NCBI RefSeq assembly: GCF_001194135.2
Contig: NC_068983.1
Span: 70,250,074 to 70,306,552, forward strand
DNA length: 56,479 nucleotides
Origin: Octopus bimaculoides
Lineage: Eukaryota
Direction of reading: 5' to 3'
In this document: positions 5,695 through 54,575 of the stretch, in pieces
Position numbering within the stretch: the first letter of the stretch is position 1
Layout of the letters: each line of letters opens with the position of its first letter
Notes under the pieces: generated by a model
Seen by the model: only the letters and a program-made list of their open reading frames with translations
Database searches by the model: none
Told to the model about the DNA's origin: nothing
Program-made: the position numbers and the translations under genes

Positions 5695-6254
5695 TACACA
5701 CACACTGGCATTTAATTTTCAATATATGCTCACTCTGTCAATATATTGTTCATGTAGACTGTGGAAAACTGAGTGTGTATGGCTCTTAAAGATAAACATC
5801 GTTTGGTTATCATTTAAGTTTTACAAACTCCAAACTATAATCTGTATTGAATAACCATGTTTTTTTTCTTCTATAAATATCCATTCCATGCAAGGCAACA
5901 AAATGGTAGAAGTGTTAAGCATCAAAAACTGCTTTATGATTCTTTTGGCTGTTTACATTCTCAACTGAAATCCCAGAAAGGCCAACTTTACCTTTCAGGG
6001 TTAAGAAAATAAAGTACCATTTTAGTATTGGGGTCGATAGCATTCACTAACCTTTCCTGTAAAAATTTTTCTTCAGTTTGAAACAATATTTCCACTCCAT
6101 TCTGTAGATGTCCTGACCATCAGTCTATGTTTAGGTAGATCCAGTAGCTTATGTGTTTTTCTATCAAGGGTTTCTAATCCCTTACTCAACCCCTCTCTTT
6201 TTCTAGAAGAGACATTTTGAGTGGTACCCATGACCTTTCTCACTGTGCAAATGT

Positions 6255-6678: not shown

Positions 6679-6724
6679 ACCGGTATTTGTCTCACCACTA
6701 ATGCTTGACAACCAATGTTGGTGT

Positions 6725-7110
6725 TATAGTTCTATATTTAAGAGATGTGGAATTATGTACATTATTTACATTATTTACATTTGATGGATATTTGTCCTCA
6801 TCCTGTTTGTTGTTAACCCAACGTTTCGGCTGATATACCCTCCAGCCTTCATCAGGTAAATTGGGGAAATGTCGAACCTGGGTTTTCATTCCTAAGGTTT
6901 TTTTCGATGTTATTATTATTATTATTATTATTATTCAGGTCACTGCTTGGAATCAAACTTGGAATTTTAGGGTTAGTAGCCCACACTCTTAACCACTATA
7001 CCGGGCATATGGCATAGTGGTTAAGAGCGCAGGCTACTAACCCCAAGATTCCAAGTTCAATTCCAAGCCATGACCTGAATATTGATAATAATAATAATGC
7101 TAATGATAAT

Positions 7111-7152
<42 letters not shown>

Positions 7153-7307
7153 TATAATAATAATAACATCGAAAAATACCTTAGGAATGAGAACCCAGGT
7201 TTGAAATTTCCCCAAGACACCTGTTGAAGGCTAGAGGGTATATCAGCCAAAATGGGTTAACAACAAGCAGGATGAGGACAAATATCTGTCAAATGTAAAT
7301 AATGTAC
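6725..7307. mobile_element. Fold-back element copy A: inverted tRNA-head/(TAA)n/hammerhead arms
   Basis: The left arm is the reverse complement of the right arm around a centre near 7000. Direct repeat (c)aatgttggtgt at 6713/6714-6724 and 7307/7308-7318 forms a TSD. Homologous copy at 22172-22786. Confidence 0.85.
6815..6860 (-). ncRNA. Hammerhead ribozyme motif with intact core and degenerate stem I
   Basis: Minus strand reads tttac CTGATGA a GGCTG gagggtatat CAGCC GAAA CGTT gggtt. The core and stem II are intact, but stem I pairing is disrupted compared with copy B. Confidence 0.55.
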
Positions 7308-7581
7308 AATGTTGGTGTGTTTACCGTAACTTAGCAGTTCAGCAAAATAAACTAATAGAAAAAGTATTAGGCTTAAAAAAAAAGTCCTGGGGTCGATTTG
7401 TTCAACTAAAACCTTCAAAGCAGTGCCCAAGTATGGCCACAGTCAAATGACTGAAACAAGTAAAAGATAAAAGATTATATATATGATATTCCTTTTTGGT
7501 AGAAGCAACTATTATCCTGCACTGCATTTTAATACAATTATTATAAAATGTTATTCTTTTCCTCTAAACAAAAGCATAATA

Positions 7582-8869
7582 TTGGGTCATCCCATAAATA
7601 ATGTGATTTTTTCAATTGCATGAACTAAAAGTCAGAGGGATGTCTGATAAACTACCTGCATCAACTTGCTATAAAAGCAGGTAGTAATTCTATCTTGTAC
7701 TTATTCTTAGTGCAAGTTTTGAAGAGTGCAGTTTGATTTTAACAGCTATTTTTTCAAAGCTGTAATGGAAGAGACAAAGAAGCATATTCAGCATATTTTG
7801 CTTTGTGAATTCAATAAAAGCAACAACGCAATGGAAAGTGCGAGAAATATTAGTGCAGTATATGGAGATCAGACAATAGGCATAAGTCAGTGTCAATGGT
7901 GGTTCCAGAAATTCTGAGCCGGAAACTACAGCCTAGAAGATAGGCCTCATCCTGGAAGATCTGTAGAGCTCAACAAGGATGTCCTGTAAATCCTAGTGAA
8001 ACAAAATCCCATTGTATCTATTGAGGAACTATCAGAGAAGCTTGGATTTGGTCATTTAACCATTCATTGACACCTGCATGCCATCGGAAAACATCAGCAA
8101 ATTCGCTCAATGGGTTTCTCACAAACTTCCTGAGTCTAATCACGTGCAAAGAGTGAACATGTGCTCTTCTTTGCTGTCAAGTTTCACAAACGAACCTTTT
8201 TTTGGACCAAATAATGACTGGTGACAAGAAATGGGTTCTCTATAAAAATGTGAAGCGTTGAAAACAGGAGAGGGAAAGGAGAAACACCGGCACTCCAGGC
8301 TAAAGAAGGTCTTTGCCCACGTAAGGTGTTGTTATCTGTTTGATGGGATATGAGAGATTTAGTCCACTTTGAACATTTAAACCCAAACCAAACGATAACA
8401 AAGGAGATCTACTGGAAGCACATTGAGTGACTTAAGTCAGCACTAGAAGAAAAACGACCATTTTTGGTTTCACAATGAAGGGTGTTCTTCAATCAGGATA
8501 ATGCTCAGCCACATACAGCAAGGATGACATTTCAGAGGCTGGAACAGTTTGAATGGGAGATGATGCCACACCCACTATATTCACTAGACATTGCCCCATC
8601 TGATTATCATTTATTCCACAGTCTTCAAAATCATTTGGACGGAAAATATATGAATTCTGTAGATGAGGTCAGAACAACACTAGAGGAGTATTTTCCATCA
8701 TGGACAAGTGAATTCTGGAAGAGGGGCCTTGCAAGTCTACCAGATGGATAGAAGAGCATTGTAGAAAATGAAGGAGAGTATATTTTAGATTAAAAAAGAC
8801 CTTTGTTTATCAAAATTTTGAAAAATAAAATAAATATAAAAAAACTGCATTATTTATGGGATGACCCAA
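7582..8869 (+). mobile_element. Full-length mariner (DD34D) transposon, inactive
   Basis: TIRs TTGGGTCATCCCATAAATAATG (7582) and CATTATTTATGGGATGACCCAA (ending 8869). TA on both sides. 1288 bp. Confidence 0.95.
7765..8793 (+). pseudogene. Mariner transposase pseudogene
   Basis: MEETKKHIQHILLCEF... HTH region, WVSHKL (WVPHEL-like), TGDK, QDNAQPH, YSLDIAPSDYHLF (YSPDLAPSDY-like), ending ENEGEYILD*. Several in-frame stops and frameshifts. Confidence 0.95.
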
Positions 8870-20313: not shown

Positions 20314-22171
20314 ATACTGTTATATTTTAAAATCAATGGGTTCCATTAATATTTTATACCTCTTATATTAATTTACACAAGAACTCTGGCTTTATTTTAA
20401 AATATACTGCAATTGCTAACCTTGTTTTCTAGCATTTGATTTTTACTAATTGTTGTTTTACTTGTTAATTCTATAACTTCCTACCATTCTAACTATTAAA
20501 AAAAACTTATATCATTTATTGGATCTGCTTTATAATTACTACTAACTATTACCTGTAATGTTTATGAAAGTGATACTTATACTTTACTTTATACATACTA
20601 ATTATTTTGGAGAACATTTTCTTTTCTTCTAAAATTTCTTTCATTTTTTTTATTTATTGTGATGCATCACTTTGAAAGTATTTCAAATTCTCTAAGAATG
20701 ACATTGTGTTAAGTAACAATGACCTTAAATTTTTTAGTTTGGACCATAAATAATATACATTTGCTTGTTTATAGTTTACTTCATATGCTAATGCATTCAA
20801 AATGTTGTTATTGTTTGGTGATAGGACATCATTATAACTTATAATTAGAGAAAGTAAATAAAAAATGCCATGTGTTTGCACTGATGTATGTGCATGTGGT
20901 CTCATGTAGGAATGATAAAAAAGTTCTTCAGTTAATATAATCTTCTCACAACACTTCATATTTGAAGTAAGAGAAATATATACCAATATAATAGAAATTT
21001 ATAACTTGAACCTCTCACACAGTTTTTAGAGAAGTGATGCCTTTGATCTATAATTTTTAATATTTTTTAATGTACAAAAAAGAAATAAAATAAAAATAAA
21101 ACAATTTTTTCTGTTAAGCACGAAATTATAGGAAGAAACCACTTAACTTTGTCATAGAGTTGCATAGTTTAAGTTTTAGAGCTATGAGGAAATATGTTTT
21201 TGATTAATATCACCTCTCCAATGTTTGAACACTTACAATATTATACTTTAAAACTTACATTACATGAATAAAAAGTGAAAGAAAACTTATTGAACGACTT
21301 ATCCATGAAACTAACTCATTTCATGCCTCAGGCTTTGTGTTATGTTTCCGAATTTTGGCATTATTTTCTCCCATTTTGAGGCATCAAAGTTATAATATTT
21401 CAGTTCTAAAATAATACTAAAATATATGTTTTGGTTTAAAGAAACTAGGACCCTTCTTGAAGTTTACACAAGTTACTTTTGTGGAGATGTATAGTATGGT
21501 AAAACAAGATATGATGTGACCTTAATTGCTAACTGCATTTCCAAGTGTCACAAGAAGAAATATGCTTGTTAATTTGCTATATCCATTTTCTACATTCAGT
21601 GGCACTTCTTCAAGTGGCAACAACTAAGATTCGTTTCACAATGCTGCATAGTGGCATTTGATGACTTAATATGTCTGCCTCTGGTTGATATTTCACCTCT
21701 TTGTCATTTCAGTTCCTCTTTATCTATTATTTATACAAACTTTATCCTGCTCTCATCACTTCTCTCTCAGAATTACTATCTTTAAACCCCAATTAACTCA
21801 TCAGTAGTATTAGTTACATCAGTTATAAAGATTCTGCATTATTTTCCAGAGAAGATAGAATTTTAACTTTATTATATTTGAGTGAGTGAAATATTTTTTT
21901 CTGAATCATCTGGTATACTGAGAAAAGTAGCCCATATTGAATTGTATGATACTGGCATGTACCTAAAGGTTTTGACATTTCTTGCTTTTACCACAGACTC
22001 TGCTTTGGCTTAGAACGATTCTTTATTTCTTTGAAAGAAAAAAAAATGTATTCACTAATCCATAATCTGGTTTCTTCCATTCAATTCTTAATTTTAACAT
22101 CTCCCCTTTCACAATTACTCTGAGTTGATTACGTTTGGGAGTTTGGGTTTTTCAGATACTCATAGAAATTT

Positions 22172-22362
22172 TACAGTTCTATATTTAAGAGGTGAGGAAT
22201 TATGTACATCATTTATATTATTTACAATTGACGGATATTTGTCCTCATTTTGTTTGTTGTTAACACAACGTTTCGGCTGATATACCCTCCAGCCTTCATC
22301 AGGTGTCTTGGGGAAATTTCGAACCTGAGTCTTCATTCCTAAGGTATTTTTAGATGTTGTTG

Positions 22363-22443
<81 letters not shown>

Positions 22444-22535
22444 TCACTGCCTGGAATCGAACTTGGAACCTTGGGATTAGTAGCCCACGCTCTTAACTTC
22501 AAGATTCCGAGTTTGATTCCAGGCAGTGACCTGAA

Positions 22536-22621
<86 letters not shown>

Positions 22622-22786
22622 GCAACAACAACAACATTGAAAAATACCTTAGGAATGAGAACCCAGGTTCAAAATTTCCCCAAGACACCTGATGAAGGCT
22701 GGAGGGTATATCAGCTGATATATTCTGTTAACAACAAACAAGATGAGGACAAATATCCGTCAATTGTAAATAATATAAATAATGTT
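22172..22786. mobile_element. Fold-back element copy B: inverted tRNA-head/(TAA)n/hammerhead arms, centre deleted
   Basis: Same left terminus (tacagttctatatttaagag...) and same right end point (...aataatgt) as copy A. TSD tcatagaaatttt at 22160-22172 and 22786-22798. The arms are reverse complements; the centre is lost at about 22497. Confidence 0.88.
22262..22307 (-). ncRNA. Minimal type I hammerhead ribozyme motif
   Basis: Minus strand reads GACAC CTGATGA A GGCTG gagggtatat CAGCC GAAA C GTT GTGTT. Stem I is GACAC/GUGUU, the cores CUGAUGA and GAAA are canonical, and stem II is 5 bp. Stem III is reduced to the palindrome AACGUU. Predicted cleavage after GUU. Activity is untested. Confidence 0.7.
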
Positions 22787-23412
22787 CATAGAAATTTTGT
22801 CAGCTATTGATATGCAGAGGAAAATACACTGGTAGTTTTTCTATGCCACCCTATTCAAAATGTTTGGTTGTGTATTTTTCCTGAAGCAGTTCTGCTAAAC
22901 TCCAATCAAATGGATAAAATGAAAACCTCAAATAGATTAATAATCAGCTGAATTAATTACTATTCTAGCAATAATTGACTTCAAAAATTTATCCATCTAA
23001 TCTAAGGGTTTCTTTTCTTTTGATTATCTAATTATTTTATGTTTATCATTAATAATCAGTTATGTTGGTGAAAGCATGTTATTGATTAAAAAATATTCAG
23101 GATTTAGCTTTTTTAATATTTTAATCATTAAATTTTAAAACATTTCCACTCATTCCATGAACTCTGAGCTCTTTGACAAATTTTCTATTGGTCCTACCTT
23201 CATTAAGAACTAGCATTTGTGGAATATTTATTGTCTTTCCCTTCTACAAATGTATGAAAGTAGATTCTCTCAAGACATCTACAGGAATGATGGAGATTAT
23301 CAAATTTTTTCTTGATTTTAAGCTTCAATGAATTTGTTGATATATATATATATATATGCATGAAATTGAAGATATAAAACGGCCACAATTTACCCATCGC
23401 ACTCTGTATGTG

Positions 23413-23466
<54 letters not shown>

Positions 23467-24341
23467 CAGAGTGCAATGGGTAAATTGTCGCCATTTTATA
23501 TCTTCAATTTCATGCATGCACATTGGTTGTTTTTGAATTTGTCAACTACACAGTATAGTAGGGTCAGTTGGGCATTGTATGTGAGAAAAACAGCACCATG
23601 ATGCAATTCACTCTGCCAGAAATTTGGAAATGCCATGCTGTACTGCTTGGCATTAACACCAGAAGCTCCAATATGAACATTGCAAAGTGTTTGGGTGTTA
23701 ATCTGAGGACATGTACCAAGAATGATAAAAATCAAACGTCCAGTCAACATCATAGTGTTTGGTGTGATCACTAGTGATGGCAACATTATGTCTCCATTCA
23801 TCTTCCCATACGGCCTCAGACTCAACATGGAGGCCTACATCACGTGCCTGGAGGAGATAGTGCTGCCCTGGGTGAAGAGGGTGGCTGCTGGAAGACCCTA
23901 TGTCTGGCAACACGACTCTGCACCATGACACACAAGCAGGAGAACCCAGTCATAGCTGTCAGACAATTTCTATGACCACATCACCCCTAACATCTGGCAC
24001 CTAACTCCCCAGACTGCAATCCCCTTGGTTATTGTTATTATGTGTGGGGTGCAATTGAGCGAGAGACCAACAAAACTCTTTGTAACACCAAAGATGAACT
24101 GAAGGCAAGGATTATGGCAACATTCACTGACTTAAAGAAGGAGACAGTCCAGAAAAGTTGTAGGAGATTCTGAAGTCATCTGGAGGCCGTAGTGGAAGCC
24201 AATGGCAATTTTATTGAATAAATTTATTCTTTAGTATTTCAAGATTGTTTTCATGTAATTTTGGTAAATATATCTGTTAAAATGAGATAACAGTGTTATT
24301 TGTATTTTGCATAATTTAGACAACAGTTTATTCTCCACACC

Positions 24342-32420: not shown

Positions 32421-33270
32421 AAAATTCTAACAAGTGTTCTTCAAGATGACACATTGACACCACATCTTTCCATAATCACTCAGGACTATGCCATGAGGGA
32501 AGCCATTAGATCTTAGCTTTACAGTGGCACAAAGGAGAAGCTGTGACATTATCAAATACCATTGATCGAGCTCAAGAACTTCTTCATAAAGTTTAATTCT
32601 CTGTCAAGAAAATTGGTCTGCTCATAGATGCCACCAAGACAGAGTGCATGCCACTAAACCAAGAACATAGAAATCTTGTTACACTGGATGACAGAATACT
32701 TAATCAAATTGATGATTTTCTATATTTGAGCAACTGGATAAGTTCATCAAAAAAGGACATTGACATTAGAACTACTAAAGCCTGGGTGGCAATGAATAAA
32801 ATGGAAAAGATATGTAATACTGATCTACTCAGGAAAATTAAGATACCATTCTTCAGAACATCTGTTGAGTCAATGTTGTTGTATGGATTACGTACATAGA
32901 CCGTGACACAATCACTTGGGAAGAAACTAGATGGTGCATACACTAAAATGCTTAGGATTGTACAAAATAGAAACTGGCATCAACAAATTACAAATAAAAG
33001 ATTATATGGAAACTTGCCCAAGATAACAACTACAATTGCTCGAAGATGGTTCTGATTTGCAGGACATTGCTGGAGAAGTAAACAGGAAGTTATACACAAG
33101 CTTCTAATGTGGGAACCATCTCATGGGAGAGGGAGTAGAAAAGACCTACACAACGTTAATTAATCAACTCTCAGATGATACAAATCTCAATAAGGAGCAA
33201 TTGCCATAAGCGATGGAAAATCGAGAATTGTGGAGAGACTTTGTCAAGAAAGCTTGACCATGGTTGCAAT
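32421..33270 (+). pseudogene. RTE-clade LINE 3' fragment (RT C-terminal half), inactive
   Basis: VLQDDTLTPHLSIITQDYAMREAI (GVLQGDTLAP-like), then LSNTIDRAQELL, KTECM, DDFLYLSNWI, VESMLLYG, LDGAYTKMLR, FAGHCWR, LWRDFV. The YADD/FADD segment is deleted and stops are present. Confidence 0.9.
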
Positions 33271-38984: not shown

Positions 38985-39365
38985 CATCATCATCATCATC
39001 GTTTAACGTCCGCTTTCCATGCTAGCATGGGTTGGACGATTTGACTGAGGACTGGTGAGACCAGATGGCTACACCAGGCCCCAATCTGATTTGGCAGAGT
39101 TTCTACAGCTGGATGCCCTTCCTAACGCCAACCACTCAGAGAGTGTAGTGGGTGCTTTTACGTGCCACCAGGACGAAGGCTAGTCAGGCGGTACTGGCAA
39201 CGGCCACGCTCAAAATGGTGTATTTTATGTGCCACCCGCACAAGAGCCAGTCCAGGGGCACTGGCAACGATCTCGCTCGAAAATCCTTACACATGTCACG
39301 GGCACAAGTGCCAGAAAGATGACGCTGGGCACAGGTGCCATCCTGATTTCGATTGCCCCAATTAC
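38985..39365 (-). mobile_element. 5'-truncated retroposon 3' UTR with (GAT)n tail
   Basis: Reverse complement of the family at 54140-54575 (ggaagggcatccagctgtagaaac...ggacgttaaacgatgatg). Relatively CpG-rich, suggesting a younger copy. Confidence 0.8.
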
Positions 39366-39701
39366 TATATACATATATACACAAGTTTATTTGCTAATAT
39401 TGTTCTAGTACATGACATAAATACAACCATTTGTTTAGAAATCCATATATTCTATTTCATACCAATACATACATTTGGAAAATTTATTTGTATTACTACA
39501 TAGATAATCATATGGGGCAGATGTACAGACTATAAGAGTCAAAGAGGACTGATAATAATTAATTAACATGACAGTAACAATTAATTTAATCCATCCTTAT
39601 TATACTGTTATATCATCATCATCATCATTATCATTTAGCATCTGTTGTCCCTGCTGGCATGGGTGGGACAGTTTGACCAGGCTGCGCCAACCCCCAGTCT
39701 G

Positions 39702-53914: not shown

Positions 53915-54575
53915 TTACAGAGGCAATGACCAAGACCTCTGGAGATATGCTGTGATTAAGAAGACCCAGCAAGTAAAGCGAGATCACAGCCATAACCTAC
54001 ACCAATGTCACATAATCAGCCCATTTAAAAAGTACCTTTGAATCATCAGGTGACATTCCATGCTTGTGGAGACCTATTGAGTCAAGTAAAATCAAAAATC
54101 AAAATCAAAAATCAAAATCAAAATCAAAATCAAATCAAATCACAGTTAAACGGAAATTGTAGTTGTGGTTGATGCCAGTGCTGCCTGACTGGCTCCCATG
54201 CTGGTGGCACGCAATAAGCACCATGCATGCATGGGTTGTTGCCAGTGCCACCTGACTGGATCCCCACACTGGTGGTACATAAAAAGCACCATCTGAACAT
54301 GGTCAACGCCAGTCCCCTGGCTCCTGTGCCGGTAACACGTAAAAGGCACCATCTGAACATAGCTGATGCCAGTGCCACCTGACTGGCTCCTGTGCTGGTG
54401 GCACATATAAAGCACCCACTACACTTTCGGAGTGGTAGGCATAAGGAAGGGCATCCAGCTGTAGAAACATTGCCAGATCAGATTGGAACCTGGTGCAGCC
54501 TCCTGGCTTGCCAGTCCCCAGTCAAACCGTCCAACCCATGCCAGCATGGAAAACGGACGTTAAACGATGATGGTG
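53915..54575 (+). mobile_element. LINE 3' end (probably RTE-type) with (AAAATC)n, tandem 3' UTR units of about 60 bp and a (GAT)n tail
   Basis: The start contains the ORF-end-like fragment QDLWRYAVIKKTQQ. Then (AAAATC)n at about 54088-54140, four gatgccagtgc...aagcacc units, and a tail shared with other copies. Confidence 0.7.

Follow-up and report, generated by a model that had tools for sequence, protein, structure and literature searches.

A head-to-head, SINE-like insertion with a putative Penelope-type minimal hammerhead in the Octopus bimaculoides genome

A 56,479-nt stretch of the Octopus bimaculoides genome (NCBI RefSeq assembly GCF_001194135.2, contig NC_068983.1, positions 70,250,074 to 70,306,552 of the forward strand; hereafter the window, numbered from its first letter) contains two copies of a fold-back element, of which the second, copy B, is the subject of this work. 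We consider it likely that copy B stems from an old insertion, now decaying neutrally, of a short interspersed element (SINE)-like, non-autonomous octopus retroelement, and that its fold-back shape is the product of insertion by the reaction of a Penelope-like element (PLE), the inserted monomer being SINE-like and carrying a PLE-type hammerhead motif. Each arm of the fold-back, read from the centre outward, is one monomer of ~280 nt, composed of a tRNA-like head, a (TAA)n tract, a ~150-nt body and an optional 33-nt tail, with 3′ ends lying ~61 nt (short) or ~94 nt (long) downstream of the hammerhead. The sense strand of the monomer is the minus strand in the left arm and the plus strand in the right arm.

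Boundaries and anatomy of the two copies

Copy B is 613 bp long (window 22173-22785) and is flanked by a perfect 13-bp direct repeat, tcatagaaatttt; the coordinates first annotated had taken in one base of this duplication on each side. When either copy was compared with the window by blastn, copies A and B were the only two loci found, the remaining matches being microsatellite noise. The left termini of the copies are alike (ACAGTTCTATATTTAAGAG in copy B and TATAGTTCTATATTTAAGAG in copy A; as aligned, the common terminus reads (A)CAGTTCTATATTTAAGAG in B), and the right termini fall at the same position (...AAATAATGT in copy B and ...AAATAATGTA in copy A). In a four-arm alignment, the left arm exceeds the right arm by 33 nt in both copies. 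An inverted-repeat search placed the paired arms of copy B at 22201-22437 and 22554-22790 (237 nt, 89% complementary), and comparison of the arms puts their divergence after insertion at ~9%. The initial annotation had proposed a second, independent insertion of the element seen in copy A, with the same left terminus and the same asymmetric right end; the aligned ends and the separate duplications, 13 bp in copy B and 12 bp in copy A, bear this out. The boundaries and parts of the two copies are as follows.

22160-22172: left target-site duplication of copy B, tcatagaaatttt, an exact 13-bp repeat abutting the homology with copy A
22786-22798: right target-site duplication of copy B, tcatagaaatttt, an exact 13-bp repeat abutting the homology with copy A
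22173-22497, minus: left-arm monomer of copy B, with body and tail at 22173-22356 and (TTG)n(ATT)n at 22357-22437
22173-22205, minus: 33-nt 3′ tail of the copy B left arm, in sense ACATAATTCCTCACCTCTTAAATATAGAACTGT, defined by the four-arm alignment; the right arm is without it
22438-22497, minus: 5′-truncated tRNA-like head of the copy B left arm, with the B box at 22453-22463
22498-22785, plus: right-arm monomer of copy B, with the body at 22635-22785 and the short 3′ end ...AAATAATGT
22498-22535, plus: head remnant of the copy B right arm, with the B box at 22510-22520 and the A box missing
22536-22634, plus: (TAC)n(TAA)n(CAA)n of the copy B right arm, between head remnant and body
6725-7306: copy A fold-back, the same element as copy B
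6713-6724 and 7307-7318: duplications of copy A, the 12-bp direct repeat caatgttggtgt
6725-7002, sense minus: left arm of copy A, with the tail at 6725-6757 and the hammerhead at 6815-6860
7003-7306, sense plus: right arm of copy A, with the full 5′ end GGGCATA at 7003 and a decayed hammerhead at 7216-7258
7010-7020, plus: A box of the copy A right arm, TGGCATAGTGG, a perfect match to TRGCNNAGTGG
7054-7064, plus: B box of the copy A right arm, AGTTCAATTCC, B-box-like and ~35 nt after the A box

The head was judged by the layout of an internal RNA polymerase III promoter, that is, an A box of the form TRGCNNAGTGG at about +8 and a B box (GGTTCGANNCC) 30-60 nt downstream. This layout is present in the right arm of copy A, where the unit opens with GGGCATATGGCATAGTGG and the A box lies 8 nt from the first base, as in a tRNA gene. 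The 5′ end GGGCATA / GGACATA is shared, and an independent solo copy, L007 (one of the DNA contigs L001-L019, which were retrieved via some of the protein relatives described below), starts at the same point as the copy A unit, with GGACATATGGCATAATGG. Runs of four or more T number 0 in the sense strand of all four arms against 2-3 in each antisense strand, so that the sense strand meets this need of a polymerase III transcript. ARAGORN found no tRNA, and the Rfam tRNA model gave no match at gathering level in the whole window or at E <= 10 in both copies, L007, L015, L016 and L019; because of these results, we limit the term tRNA-like to the promoter boxes and their position, which are what makes the head tRNA-like, and do not extend it to a cloverleaf. 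With these promoter boxes, the earlier description of the arms as tRNA-headed and SINE-like holds in this restricted sense.

The inner microsatellites of copy B were measured with Tandem Repeats Finder as (TTA)24.7 at 22366-22439 in the left arm and (TAC)16.7 at 22536-22585 plus (TAA)12.7 at 22584-22621 in the right arm, which agrees with the independent expansion claimed at first reading. Short (TTG)n and (CAA)n blocks stand at the boundaries between microsatellite and body. The octopus monomer body gave no significant sign of a hidden partial tandem when the sequence before the hammerhead was compared with the tail (score 18 vs 16 ± 3).

The two copies differ most visibly at the palindrome centre. 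Copy A has an 8-nt spacer between its heads, while the centre of copy B is 48 nt shorter than that of copy A, with both A boxes gone and the gap flanked by TTAAC/CTAAC microhomologies. With TTAAC on one side of the junction and CTAAC on the other, the loss may go back to 5′-truncated cDNAs that were joined by microhomology during insertion, an explanation that fits as well as a later deletion by hairpin slippage. The initial annotation had ascribed the loss of the centre, with one A box, to hairpin or cruciform instability: the loss itself is confirmed, the count of A boxes has to be raised to two, and instability gives way as the sole cause.

The RNA fold of the whole of copy B has a predicted energy of -351.5 kcal/mol, compared with -112 ± 6 for shuffles (z = -39). 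In the predicted fold of a read-through transcript, the arms would pair over ~270 bp, as expected from the earlier proposal that they form long double-stranded RNA (dsRNA). Sub-threshold Rfam matches to the microRNA precursor models mir-580 and MIR7533 at 22442-22531 and 6919-7094, and to similar families, are a product of the head-to-head palindrome. Head-to-head SINE insertions can thus pass for microRNA hairpins.

The hammerhead motif and its decay

The body of the monomer contains a short motif that we assign to the minimal hammerhead ribozymes (min-HHRs) of PLEs. It is best preserved in the left arm of copy B and lies in the two arms of this copy as follows.

22262-22307, minus: intact minimal type-I hammerhead motif, copy B left arm, from a descriptor scan and the minimum-free-energy (MFE) fold, the cleavage site being predicted only
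22684-22729, plus: decayed hammerhead, copy B right arm, with CUGAUGA and helix II kept and CCGAAACGUUG changed to CUGAUAUAUUC

The intact motif reads GACAC / CUGAUGA / A / GGCUGG-AGGGUAUA-UCAGCC / GAA / ACGU / U / GUGUU. Its cores stand in type-I order, a 6-bp helix II is closed by G10.1-C11.1, one unpaired A lies between A9 and 10.1, and helix I has 5 bp (GACAC with GUGUU). There is no helix III hairpin; its place is taken by the palindrome A-CG-U followed by U17, after which cleavage is predicted, between 22267 and 22266. The MFE fold of the 58-nt region includes helices I and II. Both left arms have CTGATGA-stem-GAAAC undamaged on the minus strand (6829-6855 in copy A and 22276-22302 in copy B), and CUGANGA and GAAA cores with a helix II hairpin also occur in L007, L011 and L015. 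A relaxed descriptor matched only 22262-22307 and 6815-6860 in 112 kb (both strands of the window), against 0.0033 matches per dinucleotide-type shuffled window, which upholds the first recognition of a hammerhead core; a stricter descriptor with helix I and the palindrome added gave 1 site in the window and 0 in 300 shuffles.

Beyond what such a descriptor asks for, the min-HHRs of metazoan PLEs share recurrent features, namely a nucleotide between A9 and 10.1, G10.1-C11.1, a palindromic 15.2-16.2 and a helix I of 4-5 bp (PMC4209133). All four are present in the left arm of copy B. The octopus motif further resembles these PLE motifs in its CUGANGA/GAAA cores, its long helix II (6 bp) and short helix I (5 bp), the ACGU that stands for helix III, and its many dispersed copies, including opposite-strand pairs a few hundred bp apart (PMC4209133); dual min-HHRs 100-700 bp apart on opposite strands have been described (Cervera & de la Pena 2014, PMC4209133). 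It differs in its setting, as it lies in a ~280-nt tRNA-headed element without a reverse transcriptase (RT) open reading frame (ORF) and not in the pseudo long terminal repeat (pLTR) of a coding PLE.

Comparison between families supports this assignment. Contig L015 (ENA ERZ21867824, ctg96200l) carries at 6000-6245 ~1.6 copies of a 129-nt unit in partial tandem, with a nearly identical hammerhead, CTGAAGA-A-GGCTGGAGGACATATCAGCC-GAA-ACGT-T-GTGG. The octopus body and this unit align over ~145 nt with a score of 122, compared with 24.5 ± 4.2 for shuffles. Within the alignment, the hammerhead block is identical at 41 of 44 positions and the flanks at ~62%, and the three differences in the block fall at N7 and in loop 2, positions that hammerheads leave free; N7 is U, C or A across subfamilies. 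At the level of sequence and structure, the motif is a genuine PLE-type minimal hammerhead.

Catalysis by hammerheads of the PLE class is reported to be weak, dimer-dependent or protein-assisted (PMC4209133, PMC11167929). In the octopus element, a part in recognition or folding is more likely for the conserved block than one in obligatory processing, because cleavage at the predicted site would part the promoter head from the 3′ recognition end. Exact-pattern scans of IMG/VR and JGI metagenome contigs for the hammerhead block gave no matches. A literature search by the hammerhead sequence returned only an unrelated plant paper, and one on octopus and hammerhead found no paper describing the element.

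The left core is intact and the right core broken in both copies, as first described, and this is accurate as a description; as a property of the element it fails. Of the five changes in the right-arm hammerhead of copy B, three are CpG transitions, and the segment in which most right-arm lesions fall, CCGAAACG, contains two CpGs. In the right arm of copy A, this segment reads CCAAAA and has lost 3 nt, and the core has become CUGUUGA. Since the right-arm lesions differ between copies A and B, they arose independently after insertion. The left arm of copy A has itself lost helix I, with TTTAC instead of GACAC. Private substitutions are similar in number in the four arms (8, 9, 5 and 8), which speaks against a systematic difference between left and right arms, and two intact and two broken cores would split left/left and right/right by chance with a probability of ~1/3 to 1/6 by our own calculation. 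Read from these lesions, the pattern is one of independent CpG decay and no property of the element.

Relatives, the insertion reaction and competing explanations

The 61-residue open frame of an arm was used as a probe for relatives. Its only named matches are Octopus bimaculoides entries, namely a 51-aa 'uncharacterized protein', which is a translated copy of the repeat, and the N-terminus of dystrobrevin beta isoform X1. In the latter (XP_052825882.1; P0021; GCA_001194135.2), the first ~32 residues, MPMGIWHSG-EGWRVYQPKCCVNNKQDEDKYPS, are element-derived, with the A-box and hammerhead regions both represented. It appears that a relative was exonised here, giving an alternative first coding exon of a dystrobrevin beta isoform. 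A scan of 1.84 billion representative proteins yielded 65 spurious ORFs translated from element relatives; one group of these is an octopus-like family, and the other is a second family, repeated in tandem with a period of ~43 aa (129 nt). Dozens of translated relatives lie in large ENA contigs, and in L015 an antisense tRNA-like segment stands just upstream of the tandem (~5880-6000). Several short-read Logan contigs (L001, L003, L008, L011 and L017) start or stop in the element microsatellite or at the inverted junction, the assemblies apparently having been broken by hairpins.

The relatives indicate that the monomer, and not the fold-back, is probably the heritable unit. Solo monomers occur in L007 (full head, long 3′ end), L016 (long end) and L019 (short end), with differing head variants on one body. 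The short end, ...AAATAAT(GT), is found in both right arms, L001, the right arm of L002, L008, L011, L017 and L019, and the long end, ...GAAC(TGT), lying 33 nt further, in both left arms, L007, L016 and several translated copies. Head-to-head (5′ to 5′) pairs are seen at four of the seven loci with visible 5′ context (A, B, L002 and L011), and the junction is different each time. Variants that distinguish A from B stand at five sites on both arms of a copy, at one site in an arm-specific (same-side) way and at one crosswise, and both arms of B share a (CAA)n block that A lacks altogether. Such sharing of copy-specific variants by both arms is expected if each pair is made anew at insertion. 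The initial annotation had seen in the fold-back a defined mobile unit and not a chance inverted SINE pair. Chance is indeed most improbable, as one duplication spans the pair, and the solo copies and varying junctions would move the unit from the fold-back to the monomer.

The reaction that we favour would run as follows. RNA polymerase III would make the monomer RNA, whose body and tail would mimic the pLTR / 5′-ORF module known to the PLE reverse transcriptase / GIY-YIG endonuclease; the PLE enzyme would take the hammerhead / 3′ module and copy the monomer RNA in trans. Both target strands would be nicked 12-13 bp apart, giving rise to the duplication, and each nick would prime a cDNA, one begun at the long and the other at the short initiation site. 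The two cDNAs would converge on the 5′ head and be joined head to head, often 5′-truncated and at microhomology, while the hammerhead block would be kept by selection on source copies. We infer the PLE partner from the insertion signature only, that is, from the head-to-head pairs (A, B, L002 and L011), the 33-nt tail and the 12/13-bp duplications.

This signature has close parallels in studied PLEs. PLE insertions are accompanied by an adjacent inverted 5′-truncated copy, head-to-head arrangement being the commonest, and have a tail of 30-40 bp, often at one end only, with duplications of 8-10 bp or none (PMC8557442, PMC3846280). By analogy, the shared asymmetric end point of copies A and B would be this optional tail. 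Frangieh et al. showed in vitro that both DNA strands are cut and extended by a PLE protein (PMC11167929). Reverse transcription starts at two internal sites whose spacing sets the tail, and the substrate is uncleaved RNA, the hammerhead being dispensable for insertion and cleaving only with the protein (PMC11167929). The distances from the hammerhead to the two 3′ ends in octopus (61 and 94 nt) would parallel this layout, with the ribozyme shortly upstream of two start sites, the comparison being approximate.

Several observations weigh against this interpretation. The Rfam hammerhead models (Hammerhead_1, Hammerhead_3 and related) found no match at gathering level in the whole window or at E <= 10 in both copies, L007, L015, L016 and L019, which may reflect a minimal variant without the helix III hairpin. 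In helices I and II of 13 decayed genomic copies, pairing was on a level with that after shuffling (78.9% of cells compared with 78.4%), and 2 double-sided changes were seen, one of them C-G to G-C in helix II of L011. A peptide-level count of W/R vs Q/R co-occurrence is suggestive only, being confounded by CpG decay and relatedness. In the subfamily of copy A, helix I contains a G.A mismatch. The 5:1:1 count of distinguishing variants is only marginally significant (~0.05, own calculation). A block substitution in helix II separates the two arms of L002, and the peptide-level copy P0009 seems tailed at both ends; from L002 and P0009, the rule of one long and one short end is not strict. Short tandem 3′ tails similar to the short end, (GTAAATAAT)2, are also a feature of SINEs that depend on a long interspersed element (LINE). 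Finally, the cephalopod PLEs in Craig et al. are Naiad-type, without canonical hammerheads (PMC8557442).

Within the same PLE framework, a single target-primed cDNA might reach the RNA 5′ end, fold back on itself and self-prime the second arm, which we regard as unlikely but as deserving serious weight. Self-priming has been proposed (Arkhipova et al. 2013, PMC3846280), and the palindromic junctions and the subfamily variants shared by the arms of a copy would fit it. The shorter arm, however, ends at the 3′ end of independent solo copies, as expected of a start site and not of a stop, the two arms of L002 are unlike in a block of helix II, and the PLE protein extends both strands in vitro.

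It is rather doubtful that an ordinary tRNA-derived SINE was moved by a LINE of the RTE, CR1 or L2 type via its (GTAAATAAT)n-like tail, the pairs arising by twin priming or template switching and the hammerhead-like block being a relic or an unrelated conserved central domain. The short end consists of a 9-mer in tandem, like many SINE tails of the stringent type, and duplications of 12-13 bp fit target-primed reverse transcription generally. An ORF at 32597-32896 (plus) is presumably like a C-terminal fragment of a LINE RT; it gave no significant Pfam match. Twin priming, however, gives an inverted 5′ part and a direct 3′ part and not the whole unit twice, and a discrete, optional 33-nt extension past the tail is a PLE hallmark and no feature of LINEs or SINEs. 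The 61/94-nt layout from hammerhead to ends parallels the PLE hammerhead upstream of two start sites, and the same module recurs in partial tandem in L015, as in pLTRs and retrozymes.

We consider it improbable that the whole fold-back is a transcribed, retroposed or transposed unit, with copies A and B descending from a master fold-back. Such descent would account for the same termini and asymmetry of two copies that each have their own duplication, and a long end paired with a short one is probable in L002 too. The polymerase III heads, however, point outward from the centre, and neither promoter could transcribe the whole unit; solo monomers end exactly at the same long or short 3′ positions, and the junctions vary from the 8-nt spacer of A to the truncated heads of B and others in L002 and L011. 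The A-vs-B variants on both arms would call for arm homogenisation, and one-ended tails with inverted 5′-truncated partners are already explained by PLE insertion.

A miniature inverted-repeat transposable element (MITE) or other fold-back DNA transposon with long terminal inverted repeats, or a chance neighbourhood of SINEs, would fit the long inverted arms and the flanking direct repeat and is most improbable, as the termini are not inverted copies of each other, solo monomers carry polymerase III boxes, the pair shares a single duplication and the 5′ to 5′ meeting of heads recurs at four independent loci; where a MITE should have inverted repeats reaching both termini and a fixed duplication, there is an unpaired 33-nt extension at one end and a duplication of 12 vs 13 bp.

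Known systems, further features and biological meaning

Ohshima and Okada reportedly described the octopus tRNA-derived SINEs OK, OR1 and OR2 in 1994, and Akasaki et al. reportedly described the Ceph-SINEs, tRNA-derived SINEs of cephalopods, in 2010. Like these, the octopus element would be a cephalopod tRNA-derived SINE. With PLEs it shares its insertion architecture, including the head-to-head repeat, the 33-nt outer extension, short variable duplications and the microhomology or palindrome at the junction (PMC8557442, PMC3846280, PMC11167929). Unlike in PLEs, there is no ORF between the repeats of an octopus pair and both repeats are whole SINE-like monomers, and the duplications, at 12-13 bp, slightly exceed the 8-10 bp of rotifer Penelope elements.

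Two further systems join short repeats to type-I hammerheads. Sm-alpha and Sj-alpha of schistosomes (Ferbeyre et al. 1998; Laha et al. 2000; summarised in PMC6765202) are likewise short SINE-like, non-autonomous retroposons with a polymerase III promoter and a type-I hammerhead. The hammerhead of Sm-alpha is canonical, with loop-loop contacts, and its copies typically lie in tandem, whereas the octopus element has the minimal variant, an internal (TAA)n and an occurrence as solo copies or head-to-head pairs with a one-sided tail. Animal non-LTR retrozymes (Cervera & de la Pena 2020, PMC7229834; Li et al. 2026, preprint, 10.64898/2026.07.22.740005) are also non-autonomous type-I hammerhead repeats, proposed to come from PLE pLTRs, and the 129-nt partial tandem of L015 is in retrozyme style. 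An assignment of the window copies to the retrozymes was rejected, as these consist of tandem repeats of 170-400 nt, each with a type-I hammerhead so that a monomer can be excised, and the window copies are inverted. Unlike retrozymes, the octopus element would have one sense hammerhead per transcript, so that double cleavage and circularisation would not occur, and it has a tRNA-like head.

Other parts of the window contain features of different kinds. An open frame at 8479-8748 (plus), ...DNAQPHTARMTFQRLEQFEWEMMPHPLYSLDIAPSDYHLFHSLQNHL..., which we take to resemble the C-terminal part of a mariner-type transposase, gave no significant Pfam match, and Pfam likewise gave no support for an open frame at 23707-23925 (plus), presumably a transposase-like fragment. 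The regions 39126-39500 (plus) and 54133-54521 (minus) have similar translated strings, ...YVPPAQEPV..HWQ..., which suggests that they belong to another interspersed repeat family, inserted in opposite orientations. Runs of N (assembly gaps) lie at ~51.7-51.9 kb, with shorter ones near 35.0 and 42.4 kb, in or beside (TA)n and (GT)n microsatellites.

The element combines known kinds, in that a SINE-like unit carries a PLE-type minimal hammerhead, and is not a new kind of mobile unit. What is new is the host and the joining of head and module, which leaves the knowledge of the kinds themselves unchanged. If it is moved as proposed, the element would be a natural minimal substrate for the poorly understood retrotransposition of PLEs, an RNA of ~280 nt with no more than a hammerhead and both RT start sites. 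The various outcomes (solo, inverted, tailed and untailed) are on record in its genomic copies. The hallmarks of PLEs are legible in SINE-like elements, and this aids repeat annotation in cephalopods, where hairpins break short-read assemblies.

The cephalopod lineage has the most extensive RNA editing known. In Logan contigs of the same loci across runs, A-to-G differences over the arms were not found, and the few differences outside the element were of mixed type. From the predicted fold, ADAR editing of dsRNA formed by the element would be plausible. As a speculation to which we give a low probability, cephalopods and other invertebrates with the related 129-nt unit may host a superfamily of tRNA-headed, polymerase III-transcribed SINEs that parasitise PLEs via a module for hammerhead and RT initiation, are often born as near-perfect ~270-bp hairpins, the PLE enzyme priming from both nicked strands, and would systematically supply ADAR with substrates. 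If this is true, each hairpin insertion in an intron or untranslated region would create a long dsRNA. Insertions born as hairpins could plausibly seed such long duplexes in octopus transcripts.

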